DNA of 64,000 nucleotides from Bugula neritina (Eukaryota; Animalia; Bryozoa), in the NCBI GenBank assembly GCA_964035545.1, contig OZ037765.1:3100001-3164000 (forward strand), given 5' to 3'. Within the stretch, counting starts at the first letter, position 1; each line of letters starts with the position of its first letter. This document shows, in pieces, positions 6,801 through 36,900 of the stretch. The notes under the pieces are model-generated. The model saw nothing but the letters and a program-made list of their open reading frames with translations, was not told where the DNA came from and ran no database searches. The position numbers were made by a program, and so were the translations under genes.

Positions 6801-9800
6801 GGCAGCCTCTGTCACTGCCGGATATGACTGACTCAGAATAACACAAGCACACTTCACAGTCAAAAGTCATCAAGATTGAGAAAGCTCTCAGTACCCCAGT
6901 GTTCCACATAGTTATCAGAAAACTAAAAAATGATACTGCAGCCACCCCCCCCCCCCCTAACCTGGTCAATCTCCAAACCCGTACAGGCATAATGAGTGAC
7001 CACATTGTGAGTGTTTCAATGGCAGCATAACCACTTATTAGAGGCTGTGTTTTGGTCAAATGGCTCAAATTACTCATATAAATTAACCAGCAAGTAACTG
7101 CTACAAAGCAAGCTTGGTCAATAATGCAGACTAGCTGAAACAGTCCAACTTGTTAACTAACTATAGATAATCTTAACATTGTTTTCTGATATCCATTGAA
7201 ATATGTATTTTACCACAGAGGCTATGAAATAAAACATTATTTATTGCAAACACCATGTTATTGCGGTCCTTTACTTATGGGTAGAATTTAGCAGCATGCA
7301 GTATAACCTTTATGAGTAAGTGAATGGTAGTCATAAAGAGAAAGTAGTAGGAGCTGCACGATGCTATGTGGCTACAAATGTTGCCGAGTGATTCAAATTA
7401 ACTCTATTTATTAACATTGGCAATAGGTAAGCTAATGTAATCAGTTTGCTTATGACTTTTATTAACCGATAAATGCTAGCAAATCAACTCTAAGATTACA
7501 GAATTAGCTGAATGATACGGCAGGCAGCCTTAACTCAACCCCCACTCCAAAGGCAAACTAATTTCAAAGTCACAATATCAACGTATATATGGCATTGAAG
7601 CAAGATATGCTCACTAAAGCTGAAACAACGTTGAATATTCAAAGTCAAAGATATATTTCGCCATTAGATAGTTTGAATTGTCCACACAGTATGTAGGTTA
7701 GGCTAAGGTTTTAGAATGTAGGAGGGCCAAAGGCTACATATCTGAGATTCTTTTGAACCGGAGATTGTAGTTATATTTAGAAGGGAAAGCTGCTATCAAT
7801 ATGTTGCTATAGCTGCATAGCAAGGCATGTTTGTACAGCAGATAGCTTAGTCGCTGTACCAAAACCTAACCTATATCAACTTTTTAAACCACTGCCAGAT
7901 ATACAGATGACTCATAGTCCAACGTAGGACAACACAATACAGGGGAGATAACAAACAAATGACTATTTAGCATTACAAATCATAAATGGCCATTTCTTCA
8001 AAAACCTGCGCTGGGTTTACACTCATTCAAGTTCATATTTTCAAATAAAGTTTTAAACAATAAGCAGACTTATTAGAAAGTCCCAACTAGAAATAATTTT
8101 GAAAATGTTGCGTAATGATCTAAAAGCACTGGATAGTGTTTTACTTCAACTAACTAAAACAGATGGGAAATGTTTAAAAATATTATATAATTATAAATAT
8201 AAAATATTATAAAAAAATAGTGGTACATTGAATATGCTTAGTAAACGTTGATTGAGTTTATAAATTCTCGCCCAAATCTTCTCCTAGCAAATTATACAGA
8301 GTAACTCACTCACTATGAATACAGTATTCAAATACACACAATAGAGCATCGGGGAAGGACTTAATAGCAGTGGCTAAGCTATCTAAACTTCATAACTGTA
8401 CAAAGGATTCTATTCTAGTTGAATTAAATGTTGTATAACTGCTCACTTAACAAAAAACTATTTCCAACTTAAACCCAGACATGATGAAAATTAAGTTAAA
8501 GGAATCAGTAAGCTGGGGCAAAGATTCAAGTGATTGTATGATCAATTCTTGGCATACAAGAATATTGATGACTTAACCAGGTATAATCTGTATTATCTGA
8601 AGTGTGCTTCAACTGTCAACAGGTAAAATTATGGCTATAAAACTCTCATGATGTTGTATAATACAGACAGTATTATTAGTCTGACAGATTGAGATAGCTT
8701 AGGTTGTAAACACTTCATATTCATTTTGAATCAGAAATTCACCTTTATCAGTTTCTAATATGTTAAATACAAGGCGTGCTTTAAAAATTCTCACACATTT
8801 ATTTATTTACAGTCTTCAAAATTAGCTTCCAAACAACAGAACATAAATTCAAGATAAGAAGTAAAGTAAAGCCATAATTTCACATAATACCATTAGTGAG
8901 GTTTATAAAAGTGTGTTTTGGTTTCTGAGAGTGTAACTGGTATTTGTTATGACTTCTGAGAGTGAGTAATGTTTGATTGTTCTGGTTTGGCAAGGGTGCA
9001 GTGTTGTTCAACTACCATGATTTAGAAGATTCAGGAGAAATAGTAAAAGGTAAGAAGAAACACCCTGGTGGATATTGCACTCACAAAATATTTGGATATT
9101 AAAAACTCCCAACAAAAACTTCAACAAATGAAAAATATACTTCTGAAATATTCAAAAAAAGTGTTATTTTATTCATATTTCGGTTAGCGTTGGAAGTTGA
9201 ACTCCTATAAAATATCTTCGAGAGCTTTATACACTGAAATCTACTGACTCAACTATGTATAGGCATCAGTGGGCTGATTTCATAGTTTAACCTTTTAACT
9301 CGATTTCAAACAGATATGTTGAAACTTTGCAATAGATATTAAATTAATACTCAGCCTAGTTCAAAGTGTAAATTAACCATCATAATGGAAAACTTTCTTT
9401 TAATCTACTAGTAAAATGAGAATCAGCTGTGGTCTAGTGGATAGAGTGCTGACAGTGAGTGATGCCTACAGTCTACAGTCTACACCTTATACAGGTATAT
9501 AGCATCATTCTAGAAGCAGCTCCAAGTTGGGGGTAAAGGACAATTTTAGCTTGGGGGTCTCAAGTTTAGAAATAGGTTCTTAACTGCAAAACCTGAGACC
9601 CTCAAACTAGAACCATCATTCACCTCCAACTCAGAGCTGCTTCTAGAACAATTCTTAGTGCCGCAGTCAACATTGCCAAAGCTCCCATGATATGTTACAA
9701 CAGCTCTACCCCCCCCCCCCACCACAATCTGTTTAAATATTGCTCACCATCAAACAGTGGCGAGTATCAAATATTAATGGAGGAAACCAGCAACACTGCT

Positions 9801-28373: not shown

Positions 28374-30194
28374 ATGGCAAGTTTTCACACAGTTATCCCT
28401 GATCCTGATGATCTTTGTGAGTGTCCATATGATAAAGCTCATCTCATTAGGGCCAAAAAGATGCCCTACCACTTGATCAAATGTCGAAAGGTAACTTCGA
28501 TACAGTTGCTATGACTATGTCTAATGCCAACAGCTGAATTAACCAATTGCCCTGCTTTGATGGTTTGGTAGGTAGAATTTGTTTTTCGTTTCGCAGAACC
28601 ATCCAACTAGAGCGATGAGAATCTGCGATTTTAATGCCAGGCATGAGGTGCTGGAGGCGGAGTACAGATTTCATTTGGCTGAATGTCCAGATAGGCATAG
28701 GGTTGAGCGAGCAAAACCCAGCAATGATGATGGTGAAGAGTGGATAAAGGGAAACACTGATGTGCCCACCTACTACCCTGATGTCCACATCATTGGGGGT
28801 GATGACTGGGACGAGGAGCTGTTGACACCCAGAATCGGGGTGCATGGCCGGGAGTTGGCAGGAATCGGCTACTACAAATCTCTCAATGGGTAGGTTTATA
28901 TCTCCTGGTTTCCCTAATGGCCTGTCATCTTACTCTTTTCTGCCAGTAACTTATATATGTGATTTCTGCAGTTTTTCCCACAATTTTCTGACTGCTGAAT
29001 TAAATTACAGAATGAAGAAGTCGCAAAAGAAAGCATTCCGTGAGAATCTGGAAAGGGGGGACACTGAGGCCAACGTGGAGCTGATGACCAGTTTTAGGGT
29101 CGGAGCAGCACCCAATGATAATGATCTGACAACTGGTCCATCACCAACTGCTACAGTTCCAGTTCATTCTCCATCTTCAGTAAGTTTCTCTTTTCTTTCC
29201 TCTGTTCCTCTCTCTTCAGTAAATTTCTTGCTTTGTCCCCTACCCTCTATTCCCCTCTCTCTCCCCTCCTGCCCTCCCCTTTCCACCCCCTATTACATAC
29301 ACATTTCATATTGACTATTCTCAAGAGGGCCGCTACCCATATCTCAGACCGTAGACTAGAGCGCTGCTGTGTTTAAAGAAAATAAACATATCGCTATATC
29401 TCTATTTTTAAAACATCTTTGTGTAAAGTTTGCAATATTGCATAACTGCATGATGGCTATTTGTAAGCTGAGGTTAGAAATTTAGTTTGTATCTGTTTCA
29501 TTTTTATGTTACTGCACAGATTCAATGCATGTAGCTATTTTTTCAATTTAAACTTTCTTGTTAACTAATGATGTATTGTAAATTTTTTTGTGGCAGGTAT
29601 CAGGTCTAGGTAGGGGACGGGGCAAGCCCATACTCAACCAGAAGGAGTTCACCGTTCCAGGTGTTTCCACTACAGCTACCACACCAAGCAAAGGGTATCC
29701 GGATGAGTTTGCTGGGCTTAGAATCTCTGCCAGTCCTAGCCATGCGCATCAGAAAGAAGTAGTTACACAGGAGACTGTACCTAACTCCACTGGGCCTGTG
29801 GATGAAACTGATGTACTGAAAAATATAAGAAAAGTGAAGAAGAAGCTTGTTCAGGTTTGTACAAATTTTCCTATATTATGTACTAGTAATATTTTAGTCT
29901 GCCATTAAGAATGTTTTTGTAATGTAATGTTGTACATAGTGTTGGACTATAAATTAGCACTGTATGTTTTCAAGTGTTCAAATTGTTTCTGCTGAAATTG
30001 TAGTAATTTGTTACTTTATGTTTTCCAATCTTCTGGAGGTACTGTATATTCTGTAGATTGAGAGTCTGGTAGCCAGACAAGCTGATGGCGAAGTGTTAAA
30101 CGAAGAAGAGATACTGAAAGTTGGCAAGAAAAGCCTTTTCCTGTCAAAGTTGGCTGCGTTGGAGCGAAAAGCAGCGGCAGTTAGCTCTCCGTAA
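28374..30194 (+). CDS. GTSF1: Gametocyte-specific factor 1 / Asterix homolog (tandem CHHC U11-48K zinc fingers), ~324 aa, 5 coding exons
   Basis: Exons 28374-28490, 28597-28889, 29011-29179, 29597-29854, 30057-30194 (975 nt, phases consistent). The N-terminus [33 protein letters not shown]...CDFNARHEV...FHLAECPDR matches the GTSF1 double CHHC finger and is followed by acidic Trp motifs (EEW, DDWDEE). Confidence 0.92.
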
Positions 30195-30930: not shown

Positions 30931-33900
30931 TTACATAACTAAGCATGTTCTAGATTTCTCATAGGAACTTGTCAATCTATGTACCCCACTGTTATTTCTT
31001 GCAGTTTTGACAGCAGACACTGTCCGGTATACTGGTCGAATCTTCGTGAGGATCTCTCTGTCAGAAGAGCTGCCAAACTTATGGTTGTTTGCCGTCAAAG
31101 GACGAATTGTTACTGCACTCGAGTTGGTGCGATCCCAGGTTGCAGTGTGAGGCCTCCTTGTTTTTACAACCTCCTTCGTCTCTGGCGGTTCATCTTCTAC
31201 CACCTGCCTGCTTGCTATTGCCAAGATCAGCCGGTTTATCTCGTCTTTTTCTGGGTCAATGATCACGTAGCCGAGCACTGTCCCATCTACGCAGCCTATC
31301 ATAATAGTTTTGTCATCATTGCTCGCTTTTATGTGACAAATGTCAACATGTACATCACATTCTCCCAGTATTTTGTTGTCCTCTATTCTTTCTACTATCA
31401 AGTGAGATCCTCGATAGTATGCCGCTACTTCTCCATTTTTCAAGAGTGCCAACTTGCTCATTCTGTTGCCTATAGTTCCAACTCGCTTCCCAGAATTCAT
31501 AGCAAATATCATTCCTAGGTTTGCATTTACACACAATGACCCGTCATTAGTTAGATAGAGAGCATTTAGGTCTGTTGTGGATGGCATGAAGTTATCACTG
31601 TAGCGCAAAATAGTTCCCATTGCCAAATCAACACTCACAAAACCGTAGCCAGAGCTTTGTTTGTTCCTGCTAATTTTTACCTGGTAAATAGCAATGATCT
31701 CAGTGCTATTCATTGGTATTGGCACAAGAGCAATGATATGCCGGTCATCTAAAAATGGGGACAGCTCATTTTTGCCAATTATGCTGTGCATATAACGGCC
31801 CTTGAGATAAAAAGCACAAACTGCAGGGTTGTTGTAGCAAGCTTCTTTCTCTAAATATTGGTCGGCAGTTAGAAGGGCCATGTAGGTATCATCATAGGTG
31901 ACAAACGGTTTACTTATCGCGTGGTTGATGATGAAATCATAAGTAAACTCTTCGCATGTTCCAGAACTAAAGTTAAAAATTGTTATTGTGAATGGAGCTT
32001 GGTACATTGTGGAGGCTTGAGCAATGTGAATTATGGTCTTTGATTTTCGGACTGCTACTGAATGTCCTAGCACTTGACCAAACTCTTTCACAATCTTACG
32101 ATCGTTCACAGACCATATCTTGTTACAGAATTCTGTTTTGGAAGGGTTTACAGCAACAAAAACAAAACTTCCATCACAAGTTGGTGTTATATCCACAACT
32201 TCACTTTCATGGGTCAGCAAGTTTACCAGCAGACCAGTTCGCATATCAATGACACCAATCTCATCGCTTTCGCAGCCGGTGGCAAAGCAAAAGAAGTTGT
32301 CTTCGGTCAATATCAGTCGATCAATTGGTGATGTTAGTCGGTCTAGTGTTGTAACGTCCATTACATAGTCTTTGAGGTTCCACACCTGAACACATTGAGC
32401 ATCTTGTTGCACTGTGAGGATCTGAGACTGAAATCGAGATTGGATGACTTTTGTGATGATGCCGACTGGGGCTAATATTGTTGTTTCCATTGGTTTGCCA
32501 GTTTTTAGATTCCAGAACTGGATGTTTCTAAACAAACTTGTCATGAGTGCATCATTATCGTGACTGATAATGGCATCAGTGTAGATAATTGAAGTTGGTT
32601 TTGAATGTTTTGGCAACCTGAACTCTCTCATCACCGAAACTGGCCGTTTTACATGCAGTGTCAATTTGTCAGTGAATGTGTTGTAGCTAAGAACATTGTG
32701 TTCAGCCCGAATGAGTAAGCTATTGTCATCATCGGCCAGTGAAATTTGAAGCACTCGATCACCTTTTAAAAAAGGCTGCAAAGAAATTTTTGAAACCATT
32801 TGAGTATGACCTTGGGTGCTCATATGAATGACAGTAACGATATGTGAGAATTCATCAGTTAAAAGTACTTTGCTTGAAGACTTGTTGATGGCATGGCAAG
32901 TTGGTCTGTATTCTAGGGGTGTCAGGCATACTTGCTCATATGTTTGCAAGCTATATGTGAGAACATTAGAGCCTACATTGCACAACACATAATCTTGGTT
33001 TGGCGAAATACTCACTATGGAGCCTTTACCCCCTAAGTTAACAAGTTTAACAATGTCCTGGTCTTCGAAACAGCCTATGCATAAGTGAGTTGCTTCTGTT
33101 GTGATAAGAGTAGCAATGAATTTAGAAGACACTGATACTGGGCCTAAATGGTATTTTCGTTGCTCATTCATTCCAATCAGGTTTATTGGGATGAGTTGAA
33201 ATATGTAGTTCCCTGTCATGGCATTGTGAACTTTGACTGCTTTTTCAATTTCATTATCCACTATTACCAAATAGCAATCATCAGGAGACAGGTAAGCTTT
33301 GCCGTAAGATGTCGCAATATCTGCCTGAATTTCTCCTGAAAGCAAATCAAATTTTCGAAGAACTTGAGAGTTGTCTGATTTTGTGAATACATATCTACCA
33401 TCTTGGGTGACCAGTAAGCTGTCTATCTGATCAGTGTATTCAAATGTGTATTGCAAGGGGCTTCCTGGAACTTGATGGTAATTGAACAGTGGAACAATTG
33501 CGCAGTGGGATAAACCGGCTGTGCCACACTGATCAATGAGACTTCTCAGATTGGGATATGTGTGGTAGTATGGGAGAAGGCGGCCGCTCAATTCAACTGG
33601 CAAACTATCGATATTTTTCTCTATTAGACCTTGCGCTGACCTTAGTGCACTCTCAAGCAAAGTAGCTTCAGTGCCAGGGTTTAGGCTTAGGTCAGCAAGA
33701 ATTTTCTGCAGCGATAAGGCTTTGATTTTATTGTAAAGCCAGTCATAATTGAACATCACTTTAGCGTTCAGCTCATCAAGTCTGTTGGCCAAGTACAAAT
33801 GGCGAGGTACCTGGTCATATTTTCTTTGATTGTAATCTGTTTTACCACCAGCACTTGTGTATGTCAATGGTTGGGACAAAACATATCTTTCAACAAACTT

Positions 33901-36900
33901 TTCTTCACCATTCAAGTTTTTGTACTTCATTGGTTTCTGGGACCAGTTTCCAAGATAGTAATCAGCAATGGTACAGTGAATTTTCTTTTTGAAACTATCA
34001 TTTGCAAGATACCGGTTCTCGGTGTACTCTCGTATAATGGCATGGTTCCAGTAGTAAACGTCATAGTCGTCTGCTACTTTCAGGTTCAACATAAAGTCCA
34101 GCTCATCTCTTAGCTGCGCCCAAACCTTAGGAGGACATCTTCTTACTACTGGCTCACTCTTGCAATGAACATGTTCCATGACATTTTCATCCAAAGACAA
34201 AAGATCTTCCATTTCCATGTCTGAAAGGCCTGTTTTTGAAGCAGTGAGATAAGAAACAGAATGCTTCACTAGAACTTGGCCATATTTGATTTCAAATTCT
34301 TCAAATAGCGCATCAAGAAATGTACTGCAGCTCGTGCCAAGTACTTTTGAATCGATGAGATCAAATGATCTCCATTTTCTTATTCTGTTAAACAGAAACT
34401 TGATGTACAGAGGCAATGAGCATTTGTTAAAGGCAGCTTTGATTTGTTCAGCTTGTTCATTAGTAATGCACATGCTCTCTTGTTGCAGCCATCGCAATGT
34501 AAGCATCATTGCAACATCTTGGCCAAGCGGTTTAACTTCAGTAAAGTTATCATGGTGCTTAGTTATTAGCTCTGTTTTTAGTCTAGTAAACATTCCGTGG
34601 GCGTGAGGTTGGCATGAGACAATGATTCTGACATTTTTTGGAAGACTAGATGGAAGCCATTGGAGAAGGTGAGAATTAAAATCAGGAAGTAGACTGTTGA
34701 GAGAGTCTAGGAGAAGGACCAATTGTATTGAGCTTGGTATTTCATGCAGCAGAGCAGAAAAAAATTTGAGCACCTCCGGAAAGTCCATGGGGACAGAAAT
34801 ATCTCGGTTAAGGCATGCCAGAATTTGCTGACAAATGCTCTGCAGCAGATCTCTCAGATTTGCACTTTCATGGGTGAGTCCTATGAATCGGATGACTGCT
34901 ATAGTGGACTGTGGCAGCAAATTCTTCATCTAAAAATAAACACCCTTCCATAATTCAATAACAATAGCATTTCGGATATTTCAGGCTCATAAGCCATGTA
35001 CATGAATTGAATATTTTTAAATAACGATTCAACGTTCAATATTTGCTGGTAGTAGTTAAATGACTTCTGGTGAATGTTATTTTAATATGAAATAAAAGAC
35101 AAATTAAATCACCTCTAAGAACAAGCTTGACAAGATGCAAGTTTTTCCACTGCCACTTTCTCCATAAATTGTGTAAAACTCTGTATTTCTTTCATCTTTA
35201 AGATAGTTCAACAAATTTTCTTGTTCATTGTCACGACCTAACAAGTAAGTTTAGTGTGTAGGTTTGATTACAAGTATTCGATAATTTCTAAAAACATGTC
35301 TTTTCATACATCTGCAACTGTCTACAAGTTTTTCTATTGCCTCAAATATTCTTCGAGCTAACGCTCCAAATTTGTTCAAGTCAATTGCTTCTAGCTAAGT
35401 GTCCCATTCAACCTGGTTACATTGCAGAGGCATATAAATTTAATGCAGCATTTATAAAAATATATATTAAATAAATACACTCCATGATCGATACACATAT
35501 TAAATATTTGTGGAGCAAGTAGCACTGAAACAAGGCAAGACAAACCTCAACTGTTCGTGAAAGTTAAGTTTCACTGTCATACTAAATTCTTCATTAACAT
35601 TATTACTCAGCTTGAAGGTGTAACACTGTATTATTTTCATTTGCAACAACTTCCACTATTGACCAAATAAATAGTGTTTGATACCTCTGTCTGACTATCA
35701 GTTTTAAAAATAAATACATAGAAAATTCTAGAGAAAGTTATCCTAGGTGATCATACCTTCACACGCCCTCCCTCTGTCTATCGCTTTCCTCCAATGAGCA
35801 ATCACCTCCTCGTGCAGCCTTGACCTGTAGACTTTTCTAGCCTCAGCTGCAGCAGCTGCCTCGCTGATTTGATCTCTCAGTTTGGTGGTGAGGTCATTGC
35901 ACAGCTCATCTATGTACTCCTTGTGAAACTGGCTGTCTATGCCGCTGTCGTATCGCCACAGGATTGAGTATCTGCTGATGCACACGTCAGAAAGGTTGGC
36001 TTGAATGACATCAGTCTGCAAAAGTTCAAATTTGGGCATAAAGTTTTGTATTTTGCGAAATGTTGCAGACATTTGATTATTTCATAATTATTATAATTAC
36101 CATAATTATGTTATTATTCACTGTTGTTTGTTGCATGACTTACTTGACTATGCTTGAAAAGTAAATAGTGGGTAATAGGAATGTGGTAAAGCCAGTATCT
36201 GTTTTATACTAAAAGCCTTTGTTAGACATGAAAGTAAAAACTACTTAGTGTCATAGATTTTCATAATATATTCTATTTTATTTCCATGCATTAGATTTTA
36301 GAACCTATAGCATAGTGTTGCTGTGATGAAAGATATTAGTAGAACAATAATATATTGCTACTTATGCTTGTTGGTCAACCACTGAGGTTACAAATTATGA
36401 AGATTTAAGCACCATAATTTACAGGGTTAGCGTATATAATGACTAGCCTATCATAAAATTTGCATATATAGAGCTAAAGCTGGACTTTTAACAAACGGTG
36501 ATAGCTTTAGTTCATTTTTGTAGCATGAGATGTTCTATGTTTATTTGTGAAACAAAGTAATCACTCCCCTAACTCAGAAATGAAGTAATAAGCTAGAACC
36601 CCAAGCTAAGCAAAATTTTCTACACCGAATCCTTAGGATAGAAAGTTTGTCCTAATATTATCTGAGCCATCTATTTCAACTTCAGCAGCTTCTTTCCAAA
36701 ATAATGTAATAGGTAGATAGTTAGTGCTATGCATTATTAAAGCTAATAATCTAAGCCCAAATAAATTCATTAAATTAAAATTTTAAAATAAATGAACATA
36801 TTACGAAACTCTGATTTGTGACCTAGTAAAATACCATATTATTTAATGCACAAATAAATTAAATTTCGCCATTTTGTTTATGTAGAGTATGCATAAGCCA

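Follow-up and report, generated by a model that had tools for sequence, protein, structure and literature searches.

The GTSF1 gene of the bryozoan Bugula neritina encodes a long form of the protein, and sequence-profile comparison supports a specific relation between its C-terminal tail module and the C-terminal domain of eIF2A and PYM. What is new here is this eIF2A/PYM-type tail on GTSF1, found in proteins that databases already contain. GTSF1 is an essential activator of PIWI slicing, and in the characterised GTSF1 proteins the zinc fingers and the central motif bind PIWI and the target RNA and speed slicing. To our knowledge, this mechanism has been studied solely on the short forms from mouse, fly, silkworm and worm, and we know of no such tail on the GTSF1 of these four animals. 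The long GTSF1, which was found from sponge to amphioxus and tunicates, would give the piRNA machinery a physical connection to ribosome-associated RNA that can be tested. Such a link would bear on the choice of piRNA precursors and targets, and on the ribosomes found on piRNA precursors.

Gene structure and GTSF1 identity

The window, that is the whole stretch of DNA analysed here, comprises 64,000 nucleotides (GenBank assembly GCA_964035545.1, contig OZ037765.1, positions 3,100,001 to 3,164,000). The gene lies on its forward strand at 28374-30194 and consists of five exons, with GT..AG borders at 4/4 introns (Table 1). The exons sum to 324 codons, the same length (~324 residues) that the first-pass annotation of this DNA had given for the spliced protein. 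Exon-wise translation showed that the intron phases are mutually consistent across the five-exon model. The span 29810-30194 begins with the 15 codons that close exon 4 and continues through intron 4 to the end of exon 5, and the C-terminal residues quoted in the first-pass annotation are exactly those encoded by the end of exon 4 and by exon 5. Were intron 4 retained, the frame would run into a stop 19 codons further on (ORF 29588-29908).

Table 1. Parts of the GTSF1 gene, with positions counted from the first letter of the window, and the corresponding regions of the Watersipora subatra protein P0003
Feature	Positions	Strand	Content	Supporting match	P0003 residues	Comparison with P0003
Exon 1	28374-28490	+	Start codon; first CHHC zinc finger, 28422-28487	Pfam zf-U11-48K, E 4.4e-10	1-39	62% identity, MASF start in both
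Exon 2	28597-28889	+	Second CHHC zinc finger, 28621-28689	Pfam, E 4.2e-5	40-135	54% identity
Exon 2, central acidic/aromatic motif	28735-28818	+	Two tryptophans; GTSF1 PIWI-binding 'central region' by correspondence			
Exon 3	29011-29179	+	Linker, basic and then proline/threonine-rich	Watersipora match, no Pfam family	138-194	E 2e-9
Exon 4	29597-29854	+	GRGRG box, 29603-29623; disordered linker; start of tail module		205-228	Weak, non-significant, E 3.2
Tail module, first 15 residues	29810-29854	+	End of exon 4, reads DVLKNIRKVKKKLVQ			
Intron 4	29855-30056	+	GT..AG, 202 nt, phase 0; cuts module between Q and I			
Exon 5	30057-30194	+	45 codons and TAA (30192-30194)		247-292	E 2e-9
Tail module, remainder	30057-30167	+	Exon 5; nine more residues, then stop			

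The membership in the GTSF1 family, which had been proposed from the letters of the DNA, was borne out by both domain and sequence searches. The Pfam family PF05253 (zf-U11-48K) was matched in exon 1 (39.7 bits) and in exon 2 (23.8 bits) at a cut-off of 21.1, and no Pfam family was matched in exons 3-5. When exon 2 was searched against PDB sequences, it matched best to mouse GTSF1 (6x46) and to a GTSF1 of 149 aa (entries 9nhb-9nhs). Residues 47-74 of exon 2 contain two tryptophans and a tyrosine pair in an acidic context, a motif that is also found in the closest relatives. The central region of GTSF1 binds PIWI, according to literature quoted in a later paper (PMC13650160).

Tandem N-terminal CHHC fingers and the acidic/tryptophan motif are thus common to the window protein and to the GTSF1/Asterix proteins (mouse GTSF1, Drosophila Asterix, Bombyx Gtsf1 and Gtsf1L). 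The characterised GTSF1/Asterix proteins are short, with PDB chains of 121 and 149 aa, whereas the window protein has 324 residues and carries in addition a GRGRG box and an eIF2A/PYM-type module. This comparison agrees with the earlier estimate that the protein is about double the usual length. A search of the 216-Mb assembly for PF05253 matched the two fingers of this gene and nothing else at E <= 0.01, so it is probably the sole GTSF1 of the species. At least two PIWI-clade loci, at C4:9.39 Mb and C2:7.08 Mb, point to a PIWI pathway in this genome. Genes of the AGO clade form a tandem cluster at C2:12.87-12.92 Mb.

The closest relative of the protein is a 297-aa RefSeq protein of another bryozoan, Watersipora subatra (P0003). 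Exon-by-exon comparison showed that this single protein is colinear with the exons (Table 1). Exon 4 scores higher against residues 113-139 of P0003 (E 1.7), but this match breaks the order of the exons. The GRGRG box is found alike in P0003 residues 205-228 and at the start of exon 4. The tail module was examined with a profile (A1) made from 24 tails, each of a GTSF1-like protein from another species; it contains no window, PYM or eIF2A sequence. Columns 3-17 or 3-18 of the tail profile align with the last codons of exon 4. Columns 18-54 run from the first codon of exon 5, which scored 34.9 bits. The profile columns therefore run across the exon 4/5 junction, and the tail module is complete only in the spliced product. 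Judged by its sequence, the five-exon model is coherent and colinear with the bryozoan ortholog. That exons 4-5 belong to a separate transcript and that the true GTSF1 is shorter, as the absence of the tail from some relatives or isoforms might suggest, is very improbable, because a single RefSeq protein of another bryozoan shows the same order of parts, as do proteins of about 20 further species, all phases fit, the module is whole only across the exon 4/5 junction, and no extra start codon or promoter-proximal exon is required next to a neighbouring gene that lies on the opposite strand.

Relation of the tail module to PYM and eIF2A

The first-pass annotation had claimed that the tail resembles the C-termini of PYM and eIF2A, and had proposed a profile search that would tell such a resemblance from a generic coiled coil. 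Profile A1 was searched against the whole 216-Mb genome in six frames. The top match (E 7.1e-7) was the final exon of a gene that was recognised as the genome's own PYM by a Mago-binding domain 0.7 kb upstream of the matched exon. The second match was exon 5 of the window gene (E 6.7e-6), and the subsequent matches had E values of about 1. A weak match at C1:14.1 Mb lies in a PARP regulatory domain and was discarded as a chance match.

In the PDB, with 177,635 distinct sequences, A1 had a sole match, eIF2A (8dys_A, residues 550-600 of 603; E 3.6e-7), which was aligned end to end over 51 columns. This match corresponds to the C-terminal helices of eIF2A (about residues 532-582 in human). The direct comparison of A1 with the genome's PYM tail by hhalign gave a probability of 95.6% (E 1e-8), again over 51 columns. 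A glycine and a lysine are invariant in the A1 consensus, and both are in register with eIF2A and PYM in the alignments. These matches to PYM in the genome and to eIF2A in the PDB uphold the claimed resemblance and support a specific relation of the GTSF1 tail module to the eIF2A/PYM C-terminal domain.

The signal depends on the use of a profile. When exon 5 and the PYM tail of this genome were compared pairwise by BLASTP, no alignment resulted, so the relation to eIF2A and PYM is visible at the profile level only. No Pfam model covers the tail, either in the window exons or in the orthologs, and a protein-atlas feature search with the tail returned no usable match. These blanks, together with a Foldseek search that yielded just generic hairpins at E values of about 1, are what would be expected if the tail were a generic lysine-rich coiled coil unrelated to PYM and eIF2A specifically. 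However, a profile free of PYM and eIF2A sequences ranks PYM first in 216 Mb read in six frames, and selects eIF2A alone from a PDB set that includes thousands of coiled coils, with end-to-end alignments and with the invariant glycine and lysine in register. A generic coiled coil is refuted by these results at the sequence level, and we regard it as hardly credible.

The module was also compared with its surroundings in the two related proteins. In PYM1/WIBG, the same module of about 50 residues stands at the extreme C-terminus (the 'eIF2A-like' domain), and in the window protein it ends nine residues ahead of the stop. PYM is a separate gene on contig C5 with the module in a single exon, whereas the module of the window gene is split by an intron. 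The Mago-Y14 binding domain of the PYM N-terminus (PF09282) was absent from all window exons and had a single genomic match, on contig C5. eIF2A is likewise a separate gene in this genome, and its module is also split by an intron but at a different position than in the window gene. The genome-wide scan missed the module of the genome's own eIF2A gene because the intron splits it; a search for the eIF2A tail of this genome by regular expression and tblastn gave no match either. eIF2A has a nine-bladed beta-propeller and the window protein is without one: the propeller family PF08662 was absent from all window exons, and its genomic loci are on contig C2.

The fold of the tail was modelled by AlphaFold2 on the A1 alignment, with the Watersipora tail as the sequence modelled. 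The model was confident (pLDDT 95.8) and consists of a helix (2-26), a loop round the invariant glycine (27-32), a short helix (33-40) and another helix (42-58). The tail module has about 55 residues and is predicted to fold as a long basic helix, a glycine loop, a short helix and an amphipathic helix. The helical hairpin proposed earlier is reproduced in this model of the ortholog's tail. When the tail model was compared with the PDB by Foldseek, nothing was found at E <= 0.001; hairpins are not distinguishable by this structural search.

Distribution of the tail among GTSF1 proteins

Exon 2 was searched against 1.84 billion representatives, and 122 GTSF1-family matches were obtained, many of them long. 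The tail module is present in 27/122 of these representatives. In 26/27 tail-bearing relatives it lies <=18 residues from the C-terminus, and GRG motifs are found in 24/27.

The tail-bearing proteins come from the bryozoan Watersipora and the brachiopod Lingula; the bivalves Pecten, Pinctada, Mytilus and Potamilus; the gastropods Patella and Babylonia, the chiton Liolophura and the cephalopod Octopus; the annelid Owenia and the nemertean Tubulanus; the shrimp Penaeus and the sea spider Nymphon (a doubtful merged gene model); the hemichordates Ptychodera and Saccoglossus, and the amphioxus Branchiostoma; and the tunicates Ciona savignyi and Clavelina, and the sponge Ephydatia. A word-index search with full-length P0003 retrieved at least 13 relatives, the bound being set by the word index, and the search with this protein added tail-bearing proteins of Haliotis and Saccostrea. 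With the tail of an ortholog alone (P0037, residues 280-341), the word index retrieved only P0037, which is a limit of the index itself.

Nearly all tail-bearing proteins are annotated as 'uncharacterized' or 'CHHC U11-48K-type domain-containing'. The tail is a small domain without a Pfam model, and automatic naming was misled by it. In the NCBI and UniRef collections, fragments of the Octopus GTSF1-like cluster carry the automatic names 'eukaryotic translation initiation factor 2A' and 'Partner of Y14 and mago'.

The fusion is no peculiarity of this gene. The survey of orthologs, which the first-pass annotation had proposed, showed the tail in 27 of 122 representatives from sponge to amphioxus, and the long protein is thus a pan-metazoan form of GTSF1. 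The same annotation knew of no such module on characterised GTSF1s, which holds for the searchable literature as well: a full-text search for GTSF1 joined with PYM or eIF2A found no relevant paper. The tail profile also had no match to the characterised GTSF1 chains in a PDB sequence search. A 2026 paper that surveys GTSF1 architecture (PMC13650160) names only the fingers, the central region and a disordered C-terminal region. Taken together, the wide taxonomic spread and the absence of a literature match suggest that the GTSF1-tail fusion is an old and common metazoan architecture that is apparently undescribed.

The history of the tail was followed on a poorly resolved tree of the finger region with 88 rows, on which tail presence is unclustered, with 21 changes versus 23.4 in shuffles. 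Near-identical protein pairs on the tree differ in the presence of the tail, and in some species isoforms without the tail are predicted. Because close pairs differ in this way, there must be tail-less isoforms or incomplete gene models, and the protein may be able to do without the tail. Three histories fit the tree: the tail was ancestral and was lost repeatedly, it is present in some isoforms and absent from others, or some gene models are incomplete. With the tail unclustered and the tree poorly resolved, neither one ancient paralog clade nor a single origin can be claimed.

Candidate functions of the tail

The explanation that we favour, to which we give about an even chance, is that this protein is a long-form GTSF1 whose eIF2A/PYM-homologous tail serves as a docking adaptor for a shared partner. 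The fingers and the acidic/tryptophan central motif would form the PIWI-activating part, and the tail would bring this part to a partner that is common to eIF2A and PYM. The candidates in front are the 40S subunit or translation-associated mRNPs. If the protein docked there, slicing or piRNA production could be favoured on ribosome-associated RNAs.

What has been published on the binding of this module to 40S is thin and mixed. According to work cited in two papers (PMC4072592, PMC10098021), human PYM associates through its eIF2A-like C-terminus with 40S/48S in HeLa cells, and fly PYM, which has the same domain, showed no 40S association (PMC4072592). Residues 529-556 of human eIF2A are needed for translation inhibition, and together with the propeller they suffice for it; the inhibition was attributed to sequestration of 40S (PMC10570035). 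The numbering offset of the 8dys construct places this segment on helix 1 of the module. For the C-terminal helices of eIF2A alone, 40S binding could not be demonstrated (PMC10570035). The module is unresolved in 8DYS (PMC10570035), and no other PDB chain contains it. By analogy with PYM and eIF2A, tethering to the ribosome by the GTSF1 tail would be a reasonable hypothesis.

The likeness to Caprin and the mixed 40S literature mean that the tail could instead be an RNA-binding or self-association unit. On this account the tail is homologous to eIF2A and PYM, but it would work as a basic hairpin that binds RNA non-specifically and/or associates with itself, in the manner of the 'blade' of the Caprin HR1 N-lobe. 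It would then raise the local concentration of GTSF1 on its target RNA or within germ granules (nuage), with the GRGRG box alongside as a possible handle for Tudor domains. The fourth genome-wide match of A1 was the genome's own Caprin gene, with the Pfam domain Caprin-1_dimer immediately downstream. Comparison of this Caprin with A1 by hhalign gave a probability of 84.8% (E 6.5e-6) over 40 columns in the second half of the module, and the preceding Caprin exon ends in a KKIRNLEKRK-type basic stretch like helix 1 of the module. On the other hand, the genome-wide E value of A1 for Caprin was 1.7, and Caprin is missing from the PDB sequence matches, so the link on this side is weak.

Structure comparison points in the same direction as the Caprin alignment. 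The best structural match of the tail model was Caprin-2 HR1, residues 121-184 (Z 9.4, rmsd 1.5 over 59 residues, Foldseek TM 0.90), although Z scores below about 13 are common among helical hairpins. The HR1 N-lobe of Caprin-1/-2 has the layout of helix, loop, short helix and helix in common with the tail. The Caprin unit is internal and leads on into a dimerisation lobe, whereas in GTSF1 the tail is C-terminal. The Caprin HR1 N-lobe makes dimer contacts, and its basic cluster is implicated in RNA and PI4P binding (PMC11480233). The Caprin HR1 N-lobe may be a distant relative of the tail module, which would favour RNA binding or self-association by the tail.

Two further observations are consistent with an RNA-binding role. 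A hand count showed that the window module is clearly richer in basic than in acidic residues, and fly PYM, which does not associate with the ribosome, binds RNA through charge (PMC4072592, PMC10098021). However, the RNA-binding region of fly PYM was mapped to residues 1-160, outside the C-terminal domain (PMC10098021), and the presence of the same module on two translation-linked proteins is left unexplained. RNA binding or self-association as the function of the tail is a possible reading that we judge somewhat unlikely.

The docking adaptor could also be extended to a broader picture, which we hold to be rather improbable. An ancestral metazoan GTSF1 would have carried a 40S-docking hairpin that coupled PIWI slicing and piRNA production to ribosome-bound RNAs, and this link would have been lost in the model organisms. 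eIF2A, PYM, the long GTSF1 and perhaps Caprin would then share one portable and as yet undefined 'translation-RNP docking' module. According to its authors, HR1 resembles no other motif (PMC11480233); if the Caprin link is true, HR1 would gain its first relatives.

A Caprin stretch possibly related to the tail module

The tail profile, which was built from 24 tails of GTSF1-like proteins of other species, matched a two-exon stretch in the genome's own Caprin gene, with the Caprin-1_dimer domain directly downstream of these exons. The first half of the stretch contains a KKIRNLEKRK-type helix, and its second half was aligned to the profile by hhalign with a probability of 85%. The top structural match for the AlphaFold2 helical hairpin of the Watersipora tail was the N-lobe of Caprin-2 HR1. 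Caprin HR1 is described in the literature as having no relatives (PMC11480233).

Features located in the window and in the 216-Mb assembly that holds it (G000; C1, C2 and C216 are its contigs, L015, L024 and L025 stretches of it)
Feature	Location	Strand	Remark
GRGRG box	window 29603-29623		start of exon 4, GTSF1 gene
NACHT/WD40-repeat (NWD1-like) gene, large	window 30931-34929	-	further exons upstream
C-terminal module, genome's own eIF2A	L025 (G000:C2:32278500-32282300)	-
Caprin-gene stretch matching tail profile	L015:1477-1620 and L024 about 7216-7360 (G000:C1:31.284-31.286 Mb)		profile match, hhalign
AGO-clade Argonaute genes, about four	G000:C2:12.874-12.917 Mb		tandem cluster
Piwi-domain match	G000:C216:33765-34633		small contig

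Intron positions and genomic surroundings

The module of the GTSF1 gene is interrupted between profile columns 17 and 18, unlike that of the genome's own eIF2A, whose intron lies between columns 35 and 36, while the PYM module is contained within one exon. Since the three modules share no common intron position, recent exon shuffling was not indicated. The GTSF1 and NWD1-like genes are convergent, tail to tail, with a stop-to-stop distance of about 740 bp, and the NWD1-like gene has an open exon of 1332 codons. For one exon of the AGO-clade cluster, the best PDB match was human AGO2.

GRG motifs and database relatives

GRG motifs were present in 24 of 27 tail-bearing GTSF1-like representatives and in 47 of the 61 long ones without a tail, often as repeated LGRGRG units. 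Judged from sequence, the box of this PIWI cofactor is a possible candidate for arginine methylation and Tudor docking.

Database entries P0157, P0160 and P0143 comprise Octopus GTSF1-like fragments and a long Haliotis GTSF1. Among the Octopus fragments the automatic name 'eukaryotic translation initiation factor 2A' occurs, as does 'Partner of Y14 and mago', and the Haliotis protein is labelled 'translation initiation factor IF-2-like'. The probable source of this misnaming is either the tail, for which no domain model exists, or the low-complexity linkers. In a Nymphon striatum protein (P0025, 686 aa) the module occupies residues 259-295, in the middle of the chain, and is followed by four CHHC fingers; this entry is probably a merged gene model, because its cluster mates are named sphingomyelinase.
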